Positions 30,634-46,621 are shown, counted from the stretch's first letter. The stretch is DNA of 64,000 bases from Perna viridis (GCA_037379345.1 CM074518.1:26412001-26476000); one strand, 5' to 3'. Notes: generated from the sequence alone by a model not told the origin. Program-made: numbers and translations.

Positions 30634-32738
30634 CTAGAAATTAACTCCCCTCATTTGCCAAGATGCCATTTCCCCATAATGGCCGACTTTAGTATTTTTG
30701 TTGTATTTGATCGACACAAGAGGTGTATTTTCCGGTAGAAACACCGATGGTTCGAGTCCTTCATCGTCACCCCATAAACATGGCGGCAATGCAATGTACC
30801 CTTTCTCGTCGTATTTGTTTTCTTTCACATTTCCACGACCGTAAATCGGTACTTGTCTGCATAGCAACTCCATTTCGTGTCCGGTATCATTTCTGTATAG
30901 TTCCATTGAAATGCAAGCTGGCGCGTGACAATGACCTCCAGCGTAAATCAATCTCATGTTTGAAACGGTCCATTTATATACGATCGAATGCACGCAGTTG
31001 CAGTCATCTCCGTTTGGACAATTTCCGGTGCACTTGGTCCCTGGGGTAGGTTTGTTTAAAGGCCAGTTTGGATATCCAGGAATTGGTTTCCCCGGTAGAG
31101 CAAAGGCTGGTGGAATGTCATATTCTCCAGCCCATGCCTCTGTTTGATAGTAAATTCTTGGAAGGTCGTGATGAGATACTTTAGGACCATCAACTTTGTA
31201 TTCCTGGAACCAGAAACGGAACTTCATGTGGTAGCGTAAAAGTTCCGGACGAATAAGCTGATTAGCATCCAACATGATTCGCTTGTGTTTACAACAACGA
31301 AGCCCACCACTGTATTGGATGGAATTGCATGTTGGATTATGTTGTGTCAAAAGTTCACCTGCAGGACCAGGGACACAGTTTTTAACAAAGTTATCACAGC
31401 CGGTACCATCAGTTTGGCACAGCATACCAGCTTTGCCAACATCACAAAGACAATTTGGTTCTTTTTCCGAAAGCAAAGCAATAACACCTTGATCATGAGC
31501 TTTGTGGTATGCAAAAACTTGCGATGAACCGACGGCTGCAATGAGTTTGAGCTGCGAATCCTTTGTTCCATCAAAAGTAAAATATTTCTTTGACATTCCT
31601 GTCAATGACCGTGTTAAAACAATGGTCCGATGACCATCAACCACAGAGTTTGAAACAAGAGTGACACTCTTTGCAAGCGCGTCGCCAGGGCAATGTTCAG
31701 CCTCACTTCCACATGTGCCAATCTGCCTCTCGAATACGCCTGTTGAATTCATGATAAGTGCATAGGGTGAGTCCGCCATATGAGTGGCGTTAAAACCAAG
31801 TCCAAACCAAGCGTCAGGTGGTCCGGTTGCCGTTATTTTAACCATGCTACCAATCTCGATCTTGATGGTAACTCCTATGCTGAATGTATGACTGCCCATT
31901 CGTGTATTGGAAGTAGAACATTGTTTTGTACTGTGGAATTTATTGAAAGTAGCAATCCACTTACCATCTAGGCTTTTTTGAACAGTGCAACCCATTGGCA
32001 CATCATTTGAAGGTGAACTCAGTGTATCATTTTTCGCTACAGTAATTCCTGTTTGCGCCACGGCAGAAAAACACGTATTTGCATCAGTGGGAACTGTTTT
32101 ACATGAAGGTTGTGTTATGAAACCATAGTAATGTTGTGTGTACTTTGTTTTTGTACCCTGTCCATAAATCATCGGATCACCACCATAGCGGCTATTGCAT
32201 GGACATTCAAGCAAACCAGAATAAACTGCACCATCTTTTGGAATACCTAGACCATATCTGGCTTGCAGAGGTTCATCTCCAGGGACAAATTCTGTGCAGT
32301 TGTGTACGTCATCACGAGTGGCACCACAGTCTCGGTTTCGTGTGTCTATTTGCATAGGCGTAATATGCCATTTGTCTGGTGAGTCAATTAACTGAGCAAA
32401 TCCGGAGGGGTATCCATGAAAACTTTTCCTCGATTCCCCGCCGTTACCTTCACTAAACATTTGACTCGTTGGAACATTTTTGTACTGACGATCCTTGGCA
32501 GATGGTAGATCAACAGCCACCCATTTCATCGGGGACCCATGTGCACTAACATCATTAGGGTCAGGGTTTGGTACTTTCACCAATTTTGAGTGATTTCCGG
32601 TCATCCATGCCATGTAATGGTGGTTGTAGGCCCAGTTGATCGGAACTGATACGTCCATCTCCGGATTAACTCCTGGTTTACCTGGTGGATACACCATCAC
32701 TTGATCCTGTTCGTAACCAGTTATTGCCATGACCTTTC
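30634..32738 (-). CDS. Large terminal exon (700 aa) of the SURNod19/DOMON-like gene
   Basis: 698-aa ORF in the track; acceptor ttttag|GAAAGGTCATG. Confidence 0.93.
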
Positions 32739-35700
32739 CTAAAACAGAATTGCATTCGGTTATACTTAATTATTCGATGTCAACACCACAAAATATAGTA
32801 ATTTAGCTCTAAAATTTGTTCTTAGATTATTTACGTTGGCAAGACAAAAGGTTTAAGAGAATATAAATTTTTTTAGTAGTAAATAAGTATCGTATGTCCG
32901 TTTAACGTTACTCGAATTGTACATGTAACATAAAGTCCAAAGGTTTTGACAGTAAAATGTGTATAAAGTGATACACTTCAATATATCAAAGATCAACTGA
33001 CATACCAGAAAATCTGTCAATGATTTCTTTTGGAAGTGGGTTGTTGCCCTGATCAGTCCAGAACACTTCACCATAATGAGTGGCAAGTTCTGGAGAGTAA
33101 ACATCAAAGTACTCATGACCTTTGCTCTTGTAGTCGTCATTAAAAGGCACTGCTTGTTTCCCGCCACTGGCCACAAAGTAACGGCCATTCATGTTACCGC
33201 CTCCAGCTTGTCCTAATCGTGAGGAGGGCACTTCTGGCTTCCCGCCATTGGACACCAAGAATCGATCATTCAGACCCCCGTTTTGAACTTGATCTACAAA
33301 TGATTTGAAAGATTAAGAAATATAAGAGTAATGGTTATCGCATCATTTTATTCTTGAATACAGGAAGCATAATTATGAACTAGCCTACTACCAGTGCGCG
33401 TATAGTTCATCTAAGTAATATATGTACGAGGTAGAGTGCAATCATAATATCCGGGATCAAGCAATTGGAAAACAGGTACAGTATATTTTTAGACTGTACG
33501 TTGTAGATAAATACCAATAAAGCAAGTAGAAGAACGTTAAGTCGATGCATGAACAACATATGCAGAGCTATGCATACCTTACCAGCTATTCTATATATGA
33601 ATGGCACGGCAATGAAGCACGTGATATATTATCAATTTGAGACCTTGAAACTCGTATGTCTAGCTCGACGGTCGCACTATTTGTTTAGACAGCACTTCTT
33701 AATCTAGGGTAACAGCCAGGATAAGATATCATTTTTTTATGTTGAGCGGGGTTAAAGGTTGGATCATCTTGACGAGTAGGAAATTTCAAAATTAAACATT
33801 ACATTCAAATGACAGGAAAACACGGTTCTAGTTAAACTAAGTACTAAATAAAGACTTATAACGTAGATGTAAGGCTCGGTGATTATACAGCCAATAGCAA
33901 GTGGGTTTTGACATCCTCTTTCTTAAGAGCGAAACAAGTCTAGTACTTTTCTATTTAAGAATCAGGTAAAATGTGTATAAGGTGAAGAACGAAAAGAAAA
34001 TAAACGCAGGAATTGAATTGCATTATCCAAGTATGTATATGCCATAACTTCAGGGAATAAATATCTAAGAATTTGTAAAGTTTGCCCTTTTAAGGTATTG
34101 ATAGGTCAAATCTAGTTGAAATGCAGTCTTTTGAAAAATAGCGGGAAAGGTTTTCTCACTTTTCCGTATATAAGCAGTAAAAATATTCATGTTACAGATG
34201 CTTGCGGATAAAATAATTAAGCTTTTCGGTTGTTTTCTAGATGTATTTAATATATTTTAGGCAATAAAGACCAAATTGAGAAAAATGATGTGCTATACAT
34301 TACCTGATTTTTACAAACAATGGTACTTAAATGCATGAAATTGTTTAAATTAAAATTAGTTACTATAATTAGTTAGTATCTAACTCAAGGGAACATTTTT
34401 CCAAATAACCAGCTTCCCAACACCCTCTTTATAGTATAGTATACATACACGTATGTGTGTTTGCACTTAAATCCATGACAAGGTCTATATTCAAGCAAGA
34501 CATAAAAACGAAATACGTGTACGTGCCAACAACTTACTGTAACCTCTAAATGTCATTTCAAGTTTCTAATACTCCATCCGGTATCTTTATCGTCGGCCCA
34601 ACCTACCTACCTCTCCCTATTTCCAGTGGCAATCAAAAATTTTTATACCCCAGGGGCTGCTCTGGCTTCCAAAATTCTGTCGGCAGAAAAATCGCCAGCT
34701 GCCATTTTTTGTCGCCAGTTTTCAGAAATTAAAGCCAAAGGGTGCCAAAAAAATTATACTTTAAAAAAAAAAGACAGTATTAAGTTCACTGGTGAATTAT
34801 CTTTGTCAATTCTCCATTCATGACATACATGTACCCAAGATTCACTCTTGATGCATGTATAAAGCAGGTTTTTAGCTCTAGTCTGTCACTTTCATATGTG
34901 TAAAATATTAAGTACTACTCCAGAAACAGGTATTTTACTTCCATCAAAGACTATATTACTATTCTCATACAGTCCCTGATTTTAAAACATGCATGTTCAC
35001 CTAAGTTGTCCTTTATGGTCTAATTTACCTAATACAATATAATTTACTTTTTTATTATCCCATTATCTTTGTGTCCCATTCCAGTTTTCATTTCATCATC
35101 AATTCATGTTCATCTTATCATGCATTTCATGTTCATCGCCTATATACATATATATAGCTGAAATAGTGTTGCTCGGGCGTTAAACCCCAACTATCAATCA
35201 ATCTTCATTGGCCAAGAAAATACTATATGAGATGCTTTACTCAACCTTCTCATCTTACCCAATTTCAATGTTGGAGTAAGACAATATATAATGTATGTTT
35301 ATATTACATATAAACTTACTTTGTACGTGTACATTTGGAAGAGCATTGTTACTTCCACTCAGCACTGCCCACAGGAGCGTGAATACTCCTGAAAATAGAT
35401 TAACATACAAATTATTTTAAATAATTCATTTTAAATTAATGTCTTTATTCATAGATAATAGATGAAATTTCGCGCTGTTTTTGATCGTATTCGATGTTTG
35501 TAATACCCATCTTCCTATCAATATGTAAACTACAGATTTCGCGAAAAATTGTTGGCTCAGTCAGTACTAACACAGTTTCAGCGATATTTGTTTCAGGGTC
35601 AGCGATAATTAGTCAGGACCAGAAATATTTGCTCAGAACCAGTGATTTTTGTTTCAGGGCCAGCAATATTTGTTCTGGGCCAGCTAGTAATATTTGTTCT

Positions 35701-36505
35701 GTTTTTAATAAAATGAAAAAAAGTTAGTCCAAATTTCATGCAGTTGTGTTAAAATAATATTATTGTACATGTTTATTTTTGGTTTCTTTTATTTTGGTTG
35801 TATTGTTTGTTCTACCGTTTCGAAAAAGATCTTTTTGTCCAGCTTTTATGGGTACCAATATACAAAATGTAAGTTACACGTGTTTTGTCCGATATACAGC
35901 CCAGGAAAACGATAATATAAATAATATATATCGTCGTCTTTTCAATCATATGATAAATTTGGGAGTCCCTACCACTTTTAGGACAGTTGACGGTCATCGC
36001 TATCTTTTAAAATTAAAATCAAAGCGTAAGCGGAAAACAATCAGCACAATGTATGTGTTTTTTTACATACATTGTAAATGTATATATATTTTAAACTGGG
36101 GAGTTTAAATATAAAAATGTTGTAAATACTTTGGGAAACTTTCCCTTACTGTGTCTGAAATAACTAAGAAGTTAATCTGTAGAAAGGAGAAAGGAATCAA
36201 AATAAGTGGTTATATGTAAATCGTGTATATTTTTATTTACAAATATGTAATCTTTGTACAATGTACTTAAATTTATATTCTGGACCAATAAAAGTAATCT
36301 TGTGCACGTAGGCATACTCAACGACACAGAGGAACTCACGAAGTGTTACGTGTATATACATCAGGATACATTATAATTATTCAACTGTACATTGATTTTT
36401 GTAAAATCAGCCATGCATGGCTATTTCTCGTATAATTGTTTCTCGTATCCTGATAAAACATGAGAATTTACCATATCTAAGTCGAAGAGAGATTAGTTTA
36501 GCCAT
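30634..36505 (-). CDS. Secreted protein of about 831 aa: SURNod19-like / type II copper monooxygenase-like scaffold with an internal DOMON domain
   Basis: Exons 36472-36505 (MAKLISLRLRY), 35320-35388 (VFTLLWAVLSGSNNALPNVHVQ, signal peptide), 33006-33293 and 30634-32738; all junctions are phase-1 GT-AG. Motifs: YNHH, GNGGESRK, QIDTR, GGHCH, LLCRQVPIYGRG...EKGYIALPPC, GHYGEM. DOMON signature WFGLGFN..HM.DS...RTIVLTR...AYH. Confidence 0.88.
33006..33293 (-). CDS. Exon 3 of the SURNod19/DOMON-like gene
   Basis: Matches ORF 32986..33258 (EYFDVYSPELATHYGEVFW...PLPKEIIDRFS); tttgtag acceptor and gtatg donor. Confidence 0.9.
35045..35202 (+). mobile_element. SINE 3' end, same family as 54590-55092
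   Basis: attatc.ttgtgtcccat...atagctgaaata...ggcgttaaac...tatcaatcaatc tail. Confidence 0.65.
35320..35388 (-). CDS. Exon 2 (signal-peptide h/c region)
   Basis: ttttcag|GAGTATTC...CAAA|gtaagt; phases 1/1. Confidence 0.75.
36472..36505 (-). CDS. Exon 1 (start codon and basic n-region)
   Basis: ATGGCTAAA...TATG|gtaaat; phase 1. Confidence 0.65.
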
Positions 36506-37180
36506 GAACAAAACAAAATATTACCGATATAATATATATAAACATTAAAAATATAAACATTAGTGCAACATTTATTACGTAATAAATTACACGCTCTATC
36601 AAGGAAAAAATCACCAAGAAACTAAAGTTCCTACCTTTAAGGCCTACCATCATCGAAGTTATAGATAAAAACATCGCTACAGAGGTATTTTATAAACAAG
36701 ATACGTCCTTGATCTTCTTTATCTTGTAGAGTTCACGTTACGTTAACATTTTGTTCTAAATTTCTTTGTTTTACAGGTCGAATACACTACATAAAAATGA
36801 CACTTGTTTACAAACATCACGTGACCACAAACACATGACTTCTTTTAAAGAGCGGAAATGTCAGATGTGTTCCGATTGAGCTAAAAGAAGGAAAGAAAGA
36901 AAATGTAAAAAATCTTTTATTTAGGACACCAATAATGTCTGAAAAATGAAAGCAATATAGTATAATAGTTCACTATAGCATAGATGAACGTATCTTATTA
37001 ACAAGTGTTGGCTTTTTAAAACTCTTATACAGTCCACCACATTATATATTCGTTGGATTAGAAATGAAGTTTTTGAAATAAATAAGTTATGTTGATTATT
37101 AAAGTTTGTTATCTGAGCTCTAGTTTGGTAAAGTTTTGCCTACCATTGTATGAATGAAATACCTAACATTTTATCCATAT

Positions 37181-38260
37181 GGCAAGCCAAAATGGACGAA
37201 AATCAGTATTTTGTAATATTAGAAATTTTGTTATTATTATTATTACAAAATCATTCCTTCAATATTTGAAAAACACCTTTTAATATTACAAATCCATTCT
37301 GTAATATTAAAAAATAATTTTCTAATATCACAAATTCCTGATTTGGTTATATTATAAAATATCACACATTTTGTATTTTACAAATTGGATTTGCAATATT
37401 TGAAATGAATTTGTAATATTAGAAAATGAATTTGTAATATTAGAAAATGAATTTGTAATATTAGAAAATGAATTTATGATATTAACAAATCTCTTTGATA
37501 TATTGCAAAATTTGTCACATATTTTAATATTACAAAACGGTTTTCTGATAAGAAAAATCGTAATTGAATACAAAAAAATCCATTTGTTAATATTAGAAAA
37601 TCAATTTCTTATATAAAAACATGTTTTGTAATATTAAAAATAAAAAAAAACACATTTTGTAATATTAGAAAACATTTTTTATTTGATATTTGATACAAAA
37701 TCATTTTTAATGTCAAGAAATAAAAAAAATCATTTTGTTATATTAAAAAAAATTAGTATTTGATTACGTTGACCCTTATGATTTTATGAAGCTTTGTCAT
37801 TTACATATCGTCCAATGCTAAGTCACTACAATAAACTCTTGAGGGCCGGAATGTAAATACGCTAACGCAGGAATGAGACTAGTAGAATAACCGCTGATAT
37901 CTTCTTTTGTGTATTGATCTTGCTTAAGTATTTATATGACTTTATTGTATTAATTACTTCTACTTATATTTTCTGTTTGTCTGCATGATATGTTTATATA
38001 ATTGTTTGTATTGTCATTACATCTCTTGTAAGAGGAACTAAAGTTGAATATATATAAATATAAGAAAATCAATTTCTAATTTTTTTTTAAATACTAGAAA
38101 TTCGATGTAATTTTTGATATTAAAAACAATCTTTCAATATTAAAAAAGGTTTTTATAGTATTAGAAATCAGATTTGTTATAATAAAAAATGAACATGTAA
38201 TATTAAAAAAAAATAATTTTTAATATTTGAAAACGCCCATTTTTGTTCACATGGCTTGCC
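37181..38260. mobile_element. TIR-bounded element filled with a degenerate 21-bp AT-rich tandem repeat
   Basis: Ends ggcaagcca / tggcttgcc; internal unit ttgtaatattagaaaatgaat with perfect copies at about 37410-37475. Confidence 0.6.
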
Positions 38261-43689: not shown

Positions 43690-45020
43690 CTATTTGTGTT
43701 TTTGTAAATCATACAAGTGTTTCTCATCAATAACTTTCAAAAGTTTATCTTCCAAGAAAAATAATGGTATTTCAATAATCTTTCTAATTTTCTCTAATAA
43801 TAGTGCCTTCAAATGCCGTTTCTTACTTAGCCATATTTTATCATTATGGGTTAGTTCTTTCTTGTAGTAGCCCAAACCACTCATTACGTTAATTTCTGGA
43901 ATGAAGAAATGTGGACAAATCTGTTTTTCAATACATAATTTCAGAACTTCAAAAAACACTGTAAAACACATTCCAGGATTTTTGGAAAATTGTTCTGGGT
44001 CACGAGTTTCGCACAGCCACAAAAAGATAGTTTTTATATGGTATGATGTCAATCCGATACGTGATTCACCGCTCTCAAACAATCCATAACTAAGATATTT
44101 TGTCTTAATCAATTTAATGATGACGAACAAATATCGTTGATGAAAAGTAAACTTCTTCGCGAGCTCTTGCTCTGATAAGGAAAACGTTATCTTCCACTGT
44201 AATGTAAAAGCCATAAGTGACGCTCTATGCGTTAGTAAACAACCGCCTTTAACAATTTCTTCAACCACGGATCTATCTGGCCATTTCCGTTCTCGATTCC
44301 GGAAGTTAGATATGGAATGAGGCCATGGAGCTTTAAGAGCGAAGACTTTATCAACTAAAACTCTGAAAGTCAACTCTTTGTCATCGAGAATCTTTTTTTG
44401 TTCGTCAGTTCTAAATGTTCGATAAAGGGGTAACATTTCAACTTTACGTACGTCATCTATTTCTGTCTCACCTAAAATACTTGGCCCGTCCCTTTCCGGA
44501 ATAAAGCAAGTAAATCCTAGAGTTTTCAAATATGTTTTATCGTTTTCTAACTGATTAAAGAATTTGTATCGTTCATTTTCATTTACTTTATCAACGTTAT
44601 GTGTTACCTCAAGAAGACACGAACCGATTGGCATCGTACGTATTGGTTCTGGATCTATTTGTACTGTAACTATGGGTGAGTTCGTACTTGGCAGAACAAC
44701 ATGTGGTATTTCTCTATTGTAAAGTACATCTAACTCAAGCAAGAAAGAACCATCTTCATTTTTTTCTGGAACATACAAGCCGTTCCCAACGCTTCCTACC
44801 ACAGTTACTGAGTCGTGTTGTCTTTGGTTTCTGTAAGTAGCTACTTTATCATTGACATATCTTAGAAGTGGTTGAATCTCTTTAACATTACCATCAGCTA
44901 GACTCATTAGTGAATATAACTTAGCATTAAGACTATCGAATGTCTTATTTTTTATTTCTAAGTCAAACTTGAACTCTTTAATTAAATCAGGCACGTTAAC
45001 GATTGTATGACTCCTTTGAT
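43690..45020 (-). CDS. Mab-21 domain / cGAS-like receptor (cGLR) nucleotidyltransferase, main coding exon
   Basis: VGS...ELD NTase motif, third acidic residue in VDKVFAL, WP...R.RKWP....EIVKGGCLL, WKITFSLSEQEL, LTSYHIKTIFLWLCE, CPHFFIPEINVM. A poly-T/CAG acceptor at 45021 means the ORF's Met at 45051 is probably intronic. Confidence 0.92.
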
Positions 45021-46621
45021 CTGAAAAAAAAAAAAATTTAAAAAATGTCATCGAGAGAAGAATCTGGTATGTAAGGTTAGAAAAATGAAGTGGCTAACAA
45101 TTCTAAAGTCTCGTGATCAACTCATGATTATCTACATTTCAGTATTAACAGTTCTTTAAGTGTTAATCTACTCATACCCAAAAACCCCACTTCAATCGCC
45201 CATTCCGAATTAATATTTTCTATCGCTCCTAATGTATTTATATTTTATTACCTATTCCTTGAATTTCAGACGATATTTTACATTCATTCGTTTTGTAAGG
45301 TTTTTGGTATACACAAATGGTAATCAAGGAGGCCAAGATTCGAGCGGAAATCAAAAGAATATAATCCAAGAAAAAAACAGGGAAAACAGACAAAGACAAA
45401 TAAAACAAAGAACATGGAATGGCCGAAATAACATACACAAAGAAACAAAAGTAAACTGAGTTAATTTATTGATAATGCATTGGTGCAGAACCAGTAGGTG
45501 GTATAGGTATCAGTCTTGTATTACATATTCCTGAGCGGGTGTACTTCAAAACATGGAGGCTAAAACAAATATACTGCGCTTTCGTTTTGAATTTTCATTT
45601 TGTTTTTCGCAAATGATCATTTTAAAAAGTACAGGGTACATTTCAAGCTATGACACAAAAAACTTGTTTCTGAGGAAAAACAGTATTTTCATGAAAAATA
45701 ATGTTTCAAAAAAGGGGTCTATTTTATAAACTCATAATAAAAGTGAAAGTAGAAAAAGTCTATTTTTAGTTTGACCTGTTCTGATGTACTAAAGTTCGTC
45801 CCTTTCTTTCTAAAATGGACCTAAAAATCATTTTTGATATTTTCGTAATGGAACAATATGGTCAACAGTTCGATTGAAACTCCTTGTCTACTTAAAAAAA
45901 AATAATGAAAATTTAATGTATACTATAAGACTGAGACCTATACTCAATTCTAAGTTCCTGTTAGTGCCAGATTATAATTGCTCAAGTGCGTCTGGCATAA
46001 ACAGAAATACCAATTGCCCATCCATTTGGATGTCTGTAATATGAAATTTAAAAAGTATTCCCAGAAAGAAGAATTTGGGGAGTCAGTTGCCTTAATTGGA
46101 TAGAGGCGGGTTGTGTAAAACAAAACAGTCATTTTGTATCCTGAAATGTTTCAAGCGTTTCCTATAATGAATAGATATCAGAATAGTAAGTGAGCTACTT
46201 TGACCCCTATGCTTCTCCCTGCATTGCCTCTCCACACTCCATTGTCAACGCAAAATGCCATACCAACACATTTAATGATCACTTCACCTCATTTATGCAT
46301 GGTCTTTTTCTTTTTAAAGGGATTCGATAGTACAATATTTAACAACGATAATGACTAACAGCATGTTAGACAATTTTACGCATTCCGTCTTTTTGCAAAG
46401 CATACCATGTACATCACCTAAAAGCCTCGCTGCATACGTTAAAGGACATGACTGTTGAGGTCAATTCATTGACAACAGACCACATAGTCTATTATCTGGG
46501 ACTATTCTTTTCGATTCCATATAGCACACATTCAAAAGACATGGTTAATTGATATTTCTGCTTATGTAAGATGCACTTGAACAATAATCTGGCACTTAAT
46601 GAAACTTAGAATTAAGTATAC

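Follow-up and report, generated by a model that had tools for sequence, protein, structure and literature searches.

How electrons reach the two copper sites of the monooxygenases PHM (peptidylglycine alpha-hydroxylating monooxygenase) and DBH (dopamine beta-hydroxylase), which produce amidated peptides and noradrenaline, respectively, and how they cross from one site to the other, is a long-standing question in a small and intensively studied class of enzymes. A gene of the bivalve Perna viridis raises this question anew. It lies in a stretch of 64,000 nucleotides (GCA_037379345.1 CM074518.1:26412001-26476000), referred to below as the window, and its largest part is an open reading frame (ORF) of 698 amino acids on the minus strand at 30634-32730. 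An original prediction, made from the sequence alone, had described the product as a secreted copper-monooxygenase-like protein with a DOMON domain inserted in mid-enzyme that would supply its own electrons. Our structural models predict a PHM-type core of two beta-sandwiches whose halves, CuH-like and CuM-like, are separated by an insert made up of a cytochrome-type DOMON domain and a Cys-rich linker. On balance we favor, with limited assurance, a secreted two-copper PHM-like oxygenase in which a heme b acts as electron relay.

Predicted fold and domain architecture

AlphaFold models were obtained for the 698-residue product of exon 4, which carries the ORF (predicted local distance difference test score, pLDDT, 91.9; predicted template modelling score, pTM, 0.81), and for the Mytilus ortholog P0002 (pLDDT 84, pTM 0.72). 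The latter is full-length and 76% identical, and was used as a proxy where the N-terminus was needed. Both models yielded the same picture of the fold. Human DBH (4zel) was the top Foldseek match of both, with E values of 8e-9 to 2.5e-8 and a probability of 1.00, and it reached Z-scores of 13.2 to 13.3 in VIA-align. For PHM, entry 1sdw gave Z 11.6 over 249 of 312 residues with the P0002 model, and entry 6ala Z 12.9, the root-mean-square deviation (rmsd) being 3.9 Å over 219 of 297 residues with the exon 4 model. About 30 further PHM entries were found at Z 9 to 13, always with model residues 1 to 698 against PHM 92 to 324. The same two beta-sandwiches as in PHM are predicted, with 219 to 249 residues superposed at Z 11.6 to 12.9, and the double beta-sandwich expected in the original prediction is borne out on the models when DBH is included (Z 11.6 to 13.3).

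The domains follow one another on the minus strand. The exon 4 part of the N-terminal, CuH-type domain was assigned from the PHM structural alignments to 32326-32730 (ORF residues 1 to 135). The C-terminal, CuM-type domain corresponds to a SURNod19-like block at 30637-31230, the PHM alignment reaching model residue 698. Between the two halves lie the cytochrome b-type DOMON domain (31468-32049, ORF residues about 228 to 421) and the linker (31231-31458, ORF residues 425 to 500), which contains 8 conserved Cys and is predicted to be mostly coil, with high pLDDT. The cytochrome domains of cellobiose dehydrogenase (CDH; 4qi3, 4qi7 and 1d7b/c) matched model residues from about 228 or 277 to 421 at Z 11.6 to 12.8, with an rmsd of 2.6 to 3.2 Å over about 136 amino acids. 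The best of them, 4qi3, was aligned to residues 228 to 421 (Z 12.8, rmsd 2.6 Å, 136 amino acids), in agreement with the earlier claim of a DOMON-like domain in mid-enzyme. The heme b domains of pyranose dehydrogenase (PDH), ethylbenzene dehydrogenase (EBDH, 2ivf_C) and nitrite oxidoreductase (Nxr) gave Z 9.8 to 11.8, and 6jt6 was also among the cytochrome-type matches (Z 10.7 to 11.8). Structures of the PNGase F type (Z 6.5 to 7.4) and sugar-binding CBM9 modules (Z about 6) scored well below both the PHM/DBH and the heme b matches.

Candidate copper and heme ligands

Conservation was followed in a close set of 43 homologs, in a divergent set of 34 members that are 32 to 43% identical with a mean column identity of 26%, and in a 66-sequence alignment. 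Residues H37, H38, H105, M126, M318, H346, H409, H600, H602 and M688 were conserved at 98 to 100% in the close set. In the divergent set M126, M318, H409, H600, H602, H684 and M688 were kept in 34 of 34 members, with which the 66-sequence alignment agreed; N36-H37-H38 was present in all 32 members that cover the site (two sequences are truncated) and H346 in 32 of 34. As judged from the alignments, this conservation of ligand-type residues is far beyond chance. The HH, HxH..M and DOMON Met/His motifs singled out in the original prediction are thereby confirmed as conserved features, and codon mapping placed them exactly where it had put them (H37-H38 at 32622-32617, H600-C-H602 at 30933-30925, M688 at 30669-30667, M318 at 31779-31777 and H409 at 31506-31504). 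The abundance of Cys that it had remarked on is equally conserved, all 26 Cys of the exon 4 ORF falling in conserved Cys columns.

The ligand numbering of PHM was taken from PDB titles, according to which the H107A, H108A and H172A substitutions remove CuH and an M314I mutant exists. In the N-domain, N36-H37-H38 (32617-32625, minus strand, as are all positions in this section) contains the candidate CuH His-His pair and was found in 43 of 43 close and 32 of 32 divergent sequences. The candidate third CuH ligand is H105 in the motif SFHGYP (32416-32418), present in 43 of 43 close homologs and situated 67 residues past the HH pair, compared to 64 residues between H108 and H172 of PHM. M126 in the motif TPMQIDTR (32353-32355) is invariant in all three alignments. 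From the spacing and the predicted order of strands, TPMQIDTR is more likely to be the last strand of the N-domain. The original prediction had read this motif as the place where the third CuH His is replaced. Since H105 offers a candidate with PHM-like spacing that is invariant in the bivalve/haptophyte clade, and since the HH pair does not vary, that reading is doubtful: the data do not show that the CuH site was lost, and the third CuH His is probably still there.

In the C-domain, H600-C601-H602 (30925-30933) is the candidate CuM His-x-His; it stands at the end of the strand formed by residues 592 to 597, and both His are invariant in all alignments. The segment H684-Y-G-E-M688 (30667-30681) holds the candidate CuM Met together with an invariant, family-specific His, both kept in 34 of 34 divergent members. 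By arithmetic on the aligned ranges (model 698 corresponds to PHM 324), and assuming that the last strand is gapless, M688 falls on M314 of PHM; the aligned core runs on for 10 more residues behind it, as it does behind M314. With H105 and M126 in one half and H684 and M688 in the other, each half would therefore offer an HH or HxH motif, one further His and one Met.

In the DOMON domain, M318 (31777-31779) and H409 (31504-31506) are the candidate axial heme ligands. Both are invariant, and M318 precedes H409 by 91 residues. The same order, Met then His, is found in CDH (M65/H163, 98 residues apart) and in HYP1 (M90/H174, 84 residues apart). Arithmetic on the range aligned to 4qi3 (model 228 to 421 against chain 4 to 189) places H409 at chain position 177, one residue off H176, which is a heme ligand in that structure (PMC10784544).

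The candidate ligands extend the likeness to PHM, which has the same HH pair in its N-domain and the same H-x-H and Met in its C-domain and is, as is likely here, a protein of the secretory pathway with disulfides. The differences are considerable, however. Sequence identity is about 10%, some 365 residues of cytochrome DOMON and Cys-rich linkers separate the two domains here, M126 and H684 are additional invariant residues, a Cys stands within the HxH motif, the CuM-type Met lacks the canonical following Cys, and the third CuH His is uncertain.

Relation to SURNod19 and to copper monooxygenase families

The Pfam model SURNod19 (PF07712) matched ORF residues 575 to 646 with 24.5 bits, just below its cut-off of 25, and the Mytilus ortholog, with 20.6 bits, also stayed below it. 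The same model was matched at E ≤ 1 by 29 of 35 family members, and two of the four divergent members that were scanned singly, P0164 and P0154, passed the cut-off with 44.8 and 29.3 bits. The SURNod19 resemblance of the original prediction therefore holds, at a sub-threshold score in the window itself and at up to 44.8 bits in its relatives. The profile positions matched were 178 to 375, which cover the whole C-terminal sandwich and start where the insert ends; the N-terminal half of the 377-position model gave no match in any member scanned. The best Pfam match of the DOMON domain was PF03351, the DBH-type DOMON model, at residues 296 to 399 (31534-31845), with 21 bits on the ORF and 24.1 bits when the domain was scanned alone, against a cut-off of 32.7. 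Thus two of the three families named in the original prediction, SURNod19 and DOMON, were found, though below threshold, and the third, Cu2_monoox_C, was not found at E ≤ 1.

Genome scans with the Cu2_monooxygen and Cu2_monoox_C models detected at least 10 canonical DBH/PHM-type loci, all separate from this gene, which they did not retrieve. In a language-model atlas DBH-type clusters appeared only as second-tier neighbors (0.83), which we take as a lead only. On sequence grounds the protein lies outside the Cu2_monooxygen/Cu2_monoox_C families. The description that best fits profiles and models together is a sister branch of SURNod19 that bears a DOMON domain and has a predicted PHM-type fold.

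The C-domain is homologous to the C-terminal domain of plant SURNod19/MtN19. Bean Nod19 has 404 amino acids (PMC3882225), about half the size of the present protein, and from this length alone it would have no room for the insert of about 365 residues. A word search with the C-domain, aimed at plant Nod19, returned marine fragments only. The literature found on the Nod19 annotation consists of plant expression or quantitative trait locus studies and gives no biochemical function; no paper was found that ties Nod19 to DOMON, PHM, bivalves or algae.

Proposed electron path and alternative explanations

In the mechanism that we favor, a copper in the C-domain, bound by H600, H602 and M688 in a CuM-type site with H684 nearby, would activate O2 for the oxidation of a substrate. 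A second copper would be held in the N-domain by H37 and H38 together with H105, M126 or both, and a heme b bound by M318 and H409 would relay electrons from an external donor. Copper binding, heme binding, the electron path and the oxygenase chemistry are all inferred from conservation and models. A heme b stores and passes one electron, and the protein contains no flavin or other reductase module. The heme could therefore serve only as a relay that an external donor must reduce, and the term "self-reducing", used in the original prediction, was overstated. The extreme conservation across kingdoms suggests that the substrate is a common small molecule or that the reaction is very constrained.

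A precedent for such a relay is the cytochrome domain of CDH and pyranose dehydrogenase, which has the same fold, a Met followed by a His some 90 to 100 residues later, and the same proposed role of passing electrons through heme b to a copper oxygenase. In CDH, however, electrons are supplied by a flavin dehydrogenase that forms one protein with the heme domain, and LPMO, the copper enzyme, stands apart as a second protein, whereas here the heme domain would reside inside the copper protein. The reduction of ferric and cupric substrates by the heme of the CYBDOM DOMON domain and the copper regulation of plant Nod19, both taken up below, also speak for the mechanism that we favor.

A more far-reaching version of the same mechanism can be put forward only tentatively. 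The family might constitute a new class of extracellular heme-copper oxygenases in which the DOMON domain feeds the copper sites directly, possibly from a membrane cytochrome b561, and bypasses soluble ascorbate. Both halves might then contain remodelled His/Met copper sites (H37, H38, H105 and M126 in the N-domain; H600, H602, H684 and M688 in the C-domain), the substrate would be common to marine algae and bivalves, and the superfamily would extend to the plant Nod19 proteins as copper enzymes that lack a DOMON domain.

Several observations weigh against a two-copper oxygenase with a heme relay. Neither Cu2_monooxygen (PF01082) nor Cu2_monoox_C (PF03712) was matched at E ≤ 1 by the ORF, by pieces of it or by the 35 members, and sequence searches of the PDB with the ORF, a 45-sequence profile or single domains returned nothing, or chance matches to IRF3. 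The PHM/PNGase F fold also serves enzymes that contain no copper, PNGase F itself being matched at Z about 7. In the divergent set H105 is present in 28 of 34 members and replaced by Lys in five and by Leu in one, which leaves the third N-domain ligand ambiguous. Profiles built from the canonical DBH/PHM exons of this genome did pair NHH with VHH and ...NTxxGHYGEM with ...NTHFGxGTxDEM as their best local matches, but the E values of 0.05 to 0.45 (0.05 to 0.075 for the Met exons) were not significant. These pairings are consistent with the ligand assignment and do not prove it, as invariant HH columns attract each other anyway. The profile of the canonical HxH exon gave no useful alignment to the family, and that of the third-His exon gave none. 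Finally, the structure paper on DBH reports neither a pocket nor axial heme ligands in its DOMON domain (PMC4846438).

In one variant, contained in the original prediction, the protein would have a degenerate CuH site and a single, CuM-type copper, with the inserted heme b taking over as second electron store. The position of the heme-type domain, exactly between the two halves, would suit this arrangement, as would the variation of H105 in the divergent set and the reading of TPMQIDTR as the counterpart of PHM H172. The N-domain site appears to be maintained, however: N36-H37-H38 occurs in every sequence that covers it, M126 is invariant, and H105 stands at a PHM-like distance (+67 versus +64). 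We therefore consider the one-copper arrangement unlikely, although it fares best among the alternatives.

Next, the protein might handle copper or reduce metals, for instance as an extracellular cupric or ferric reductase or as a copper buffer, with the heme-DOMON domain passing electrons to bound or free metal ions. The DOMON domain of CYBDOM carries a Met/His-ligated heme b that reduces ferric and cupric substrates (PMC10784544). CYBDOM and AIR12 share with the present protein a PF03351-type DOMON domain and, as the counterpart of the putative heme site here, a Met/His heme b on the extracellular side; their DOMON domain either forms one protein with a transmembrane cytochrome b561 or stands alone with a glycosylphosphatidylinositol anchor, and in none of them does it lie inside a copper-oxygenase fold. 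Copper regulation of the plant relatives points in a similar direction, since Nod19 transcripts track copper supply, and in bean Nod19 has been validated as a target of miR398b, which responds to copper, and is under common regulation with Cu/Zn SOD (PMC3882225); this fits a copper protein and is no proof of one. The family is also concentrated in marine plankton, where acquisition of Fe and Cu is limiting. Against a reductase or buffer stand the invariance of a complete CuM-type His-x-His..Met set, which serves O2 activation in the known enzymes of this fold, and the retention of a PHM-like cleft in the predicted architecture. This explanation, too, seems to us improbable.

To our knowledge DBH is the only solved protein that pairs a DOMON fold with a PHM core. 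It raises the possibility that the protein is a copper monooxygenase which, like DBH, depends on ascorbate, and that its DOMON domain is free of heme and has a structural role or binds a sugar or small ligand, as proposed for DBH. That PF03351 is the best Pfam match, that the DBH DOMON domain has the same fold without a heme, and that CBM9 modules were matched at all would agree with such a role. Yet the invariant Met and His correspond in order, spacing and aligned position to the heme ligands of CDH and HYP1, and the strongest structural matches of the DOMON domain are all heme b proteins (CDH, PDH, EBDH and Nxr, Z 9.8 to 12.8), well above CBM9. As the DBH domain has no heme ligands, the Met/His pair is a real departure from the known DOMON-containing copper monooxygenases. 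DBH, MOXD1 and tyramine beta-hydroxylase are built from DOMON, Cu2_monooxygen and Cu2_monoox_C domains, with the DOMON domain of DBH at the N-terminus rather than between the CuH- and CuM-type domains, and DBH's dimerization domain at the C-terminus is absent here. DBH was the top match of the whole protein in Foldseek and VIA-align; the DOMON domain is closer to those of CDH, AIR12 and CYBDOM than to that of DBH, and a heme-free enzyme appears quite improbable. A protein that has the PHM/PNGase F fold but binds no metal (a glycanase, a lectin or a structural matrix protein), with purely structural His, Met and Cys, would explain the PNGase F-type matches and the lack of matches to the copper monooxygenase Pfam families, but is very hard to reconcile with PHM/DBH Z-scores of 11.6 to 13.3, far above the value of about 7 for PNGases, and with invariant residues that are exactly of the metal-ligand type in ligand-like motifs (HH, HxH, ExM).

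If the two-copper mechanism with a heme relay is correct, a natural heme relay fused between copper domains would provide a new handle on electron transfer between the coppers, and it would be the third example of electron transfer from a heme-DOMON domain to a metal, after CDH-LPMO and CYBDOM. Because the family is large, strongly conserved and unannotated, a function established here would annotate thousands of genes of marine eukaryotes. Plant Nod19/MtN19 has served as a marker of stress and nodulation since the 1990s with no assigned activity, and would receive its first biochemical hypothesis.

Gene structure and N-terminus of the product

RNA support came from mapping the raw RNA-seq reads of one run, and the contigs of three transcript assemblies, to 31200-37190. 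The depth in the raw run was about 80 to 150x, on one strand only, and three introns with GT..AG ends were each seen in all four RNA runs. The gene is real, strongly expressed and spliced, and is present as a single copy in the 723-Mb genome. The window has about 30% GC, and is AT-rich with sparse ORFs in the manner of an animal genome.

All four exons lie on the minus strand. Exon 1 (36635-36820) comprises the 5' untranslated region (UTR) and the first 13 codons, MFLSITSMMVGLK. The ends of RNA molecules place the 5' end of the transcript near 36820, and the true ATG is at 36674-36672, so that the coding part of the exon is 36635-36674. An upstream ORF of three codons (atg tta acg taa) is present in the 5'UTR at 36738-36749, about 65 nucleotides ahead of the main ATG. 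Exon 2 (35320-35388), bounded by the RNA joints 35387/36634 (GT..AG) and 33293/35320, encodes the hydrophobic core of the signal peptide and a cleavage-type motif, VFTLLWAVLSGS|NNALPNVHVQ. A start codon at 36505, where the original prediction had begun the protein and its signal peptide, was rejected: the RNA joints put this position inside intron 1, and RNA depth there is zero. Exon 3 (33006-33293), also delimited by RNA joints, encodes the start of the mature protein and the first strands of the N-terminal, CuH-like beta-sandwich, and is matched by bivalve orthologs at 80 to 88% identity in tblastn. Exon 4 (30634-32738) contains 700 codons and the stop codon (30634-30636), with the 3'UTR beyond, and encodes the remainder of the N-domain, followed by the cytochrome/DOMON insert, the Cys-rich linker and the C-domain. 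This one exon of 2.1 kb holds 88% of the coding sequence, whereas the exons of this genome's canonical copper monooxygenase genes encode about 60 amino acids each.

Translation of the exons gives the N-terminus MFLSITSMMVGLK / VFTLLWAVLSGSNNALPNVHVQ / QVQNGG..., in which a charged n-region is followed by a hydrophobic core and the cleavage-type motif S-G-S; hydrophobic leaders likewise open the sequences of five bivalve orthologs. In view of this signal-like N-terminus, the leaders of the orthologs and the 26 conserved Cys, the product of about 833 amino acids is likely to be secreted or lumenal and rich in disulfides.

Three further features of the transcribed region were observed. Behind the signal peptide, exon 3 carries two tandem copies of a motif of about 19 amino acids (GGLNDRFLVSNGGKPEVP and GGNMNGRYFVASGGKQAVP, 33140-33275, minus strand), which is present once in the orthologs examined. 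Within intron 2, segments of 33800-35200 were covered by contigs to a very high depth on either strand, with odd joints and numerous loose ends in the RNA runs, which suggests an interspersed repeat or transposable element. The assembly has Leu at residues 311 and 492 (window positions 31800 and 31256), where V311 and P492 are read in all four RNA runs and in P0001, an independent ENA protein. V311 is the family consensus and neither L311 nor L492 is at a candidate ligand; the two Leu are private alleles or small assembly errors.

Relatives, distribution and evolution

A word search retrieved 728 relatives. The bivalves Mytilus, Pinctada, Mercenaria, Dreissena and Mactra were 65 to 76% identical, and many marine protists 52 to 65%, among them Prymnesium, Alexandrium and members of the MMETSP/EukProt transcriptomes. 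Bivalve proteins share 55 to 65% of their residues with those of haptophytes or dinoflagellates. The order N-half, DOMON, C-half was common to all relatives found, some protists having an extra insert of about 100 amino acids. An exhaustive profile search extended the family to 3,528 clusters (at 50% identity) at E ≤ 0.001, with 629 at E ≤ 1e-30, and reached full-length members only 32 to 43% identical to Mytilus, for example in Seminavis, a diatom, and in Amoebophrya, a dinoflagellate parasite. Judged by these searches, this is a large, unannotated and biochemically uncharacterized family of marine eukaryotes. The longer contigs with divergent members belong to compact eukaryote genomes; the neighbors there (BEACH, HECT and mitochondrial-carrier genes) are unrelated, and no operon-type context was seen on these contigs.

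In a 63-sequence tree the bivalve sequences formed one clade with a Shimodaira-Hasegawa-like approximate likelihood ratio test (SH-aLRT) support of 99. Within it the sequence of the window fell together with those of Mytilus and Pinctada, while Dreissena, Mactra and Mercenaria stood apart. As this order matches bivalve taxonomy, the gene is old and vertically inherited within bivalves. The haptophyte, dinoflagellate and stramenopile sequences were placed relative to the bivalves in an unresolved polytomy with short branches. An ancient horizontal acquisition from an alga is possible, given the single large exon and the identity of 55 to 65% with algal proteins; the tree, with its polytomy at the decisive node, neither favors nor disfavors it.

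The canonical DBH/PHM-type loci of this genome, at least 10 in number, were located on contig C7, several of them in tandem (e.g. at 27.39-27.48 Mb; L008, L009, L014, L017, L022, L024 and L026), which suggests a lineage-specific expansion of canonical copper monooxygenases in this bivalve. Finally, a separate ORF of 453 amino acids in the window (43690-45051, minus strand) matched Mab-21_C with 48.5 bits and, weakly, the Mab-21 nucleotidyltransferase model, and looks, from these matches, like a cGAS/cGLR-like innate-immunity gene.

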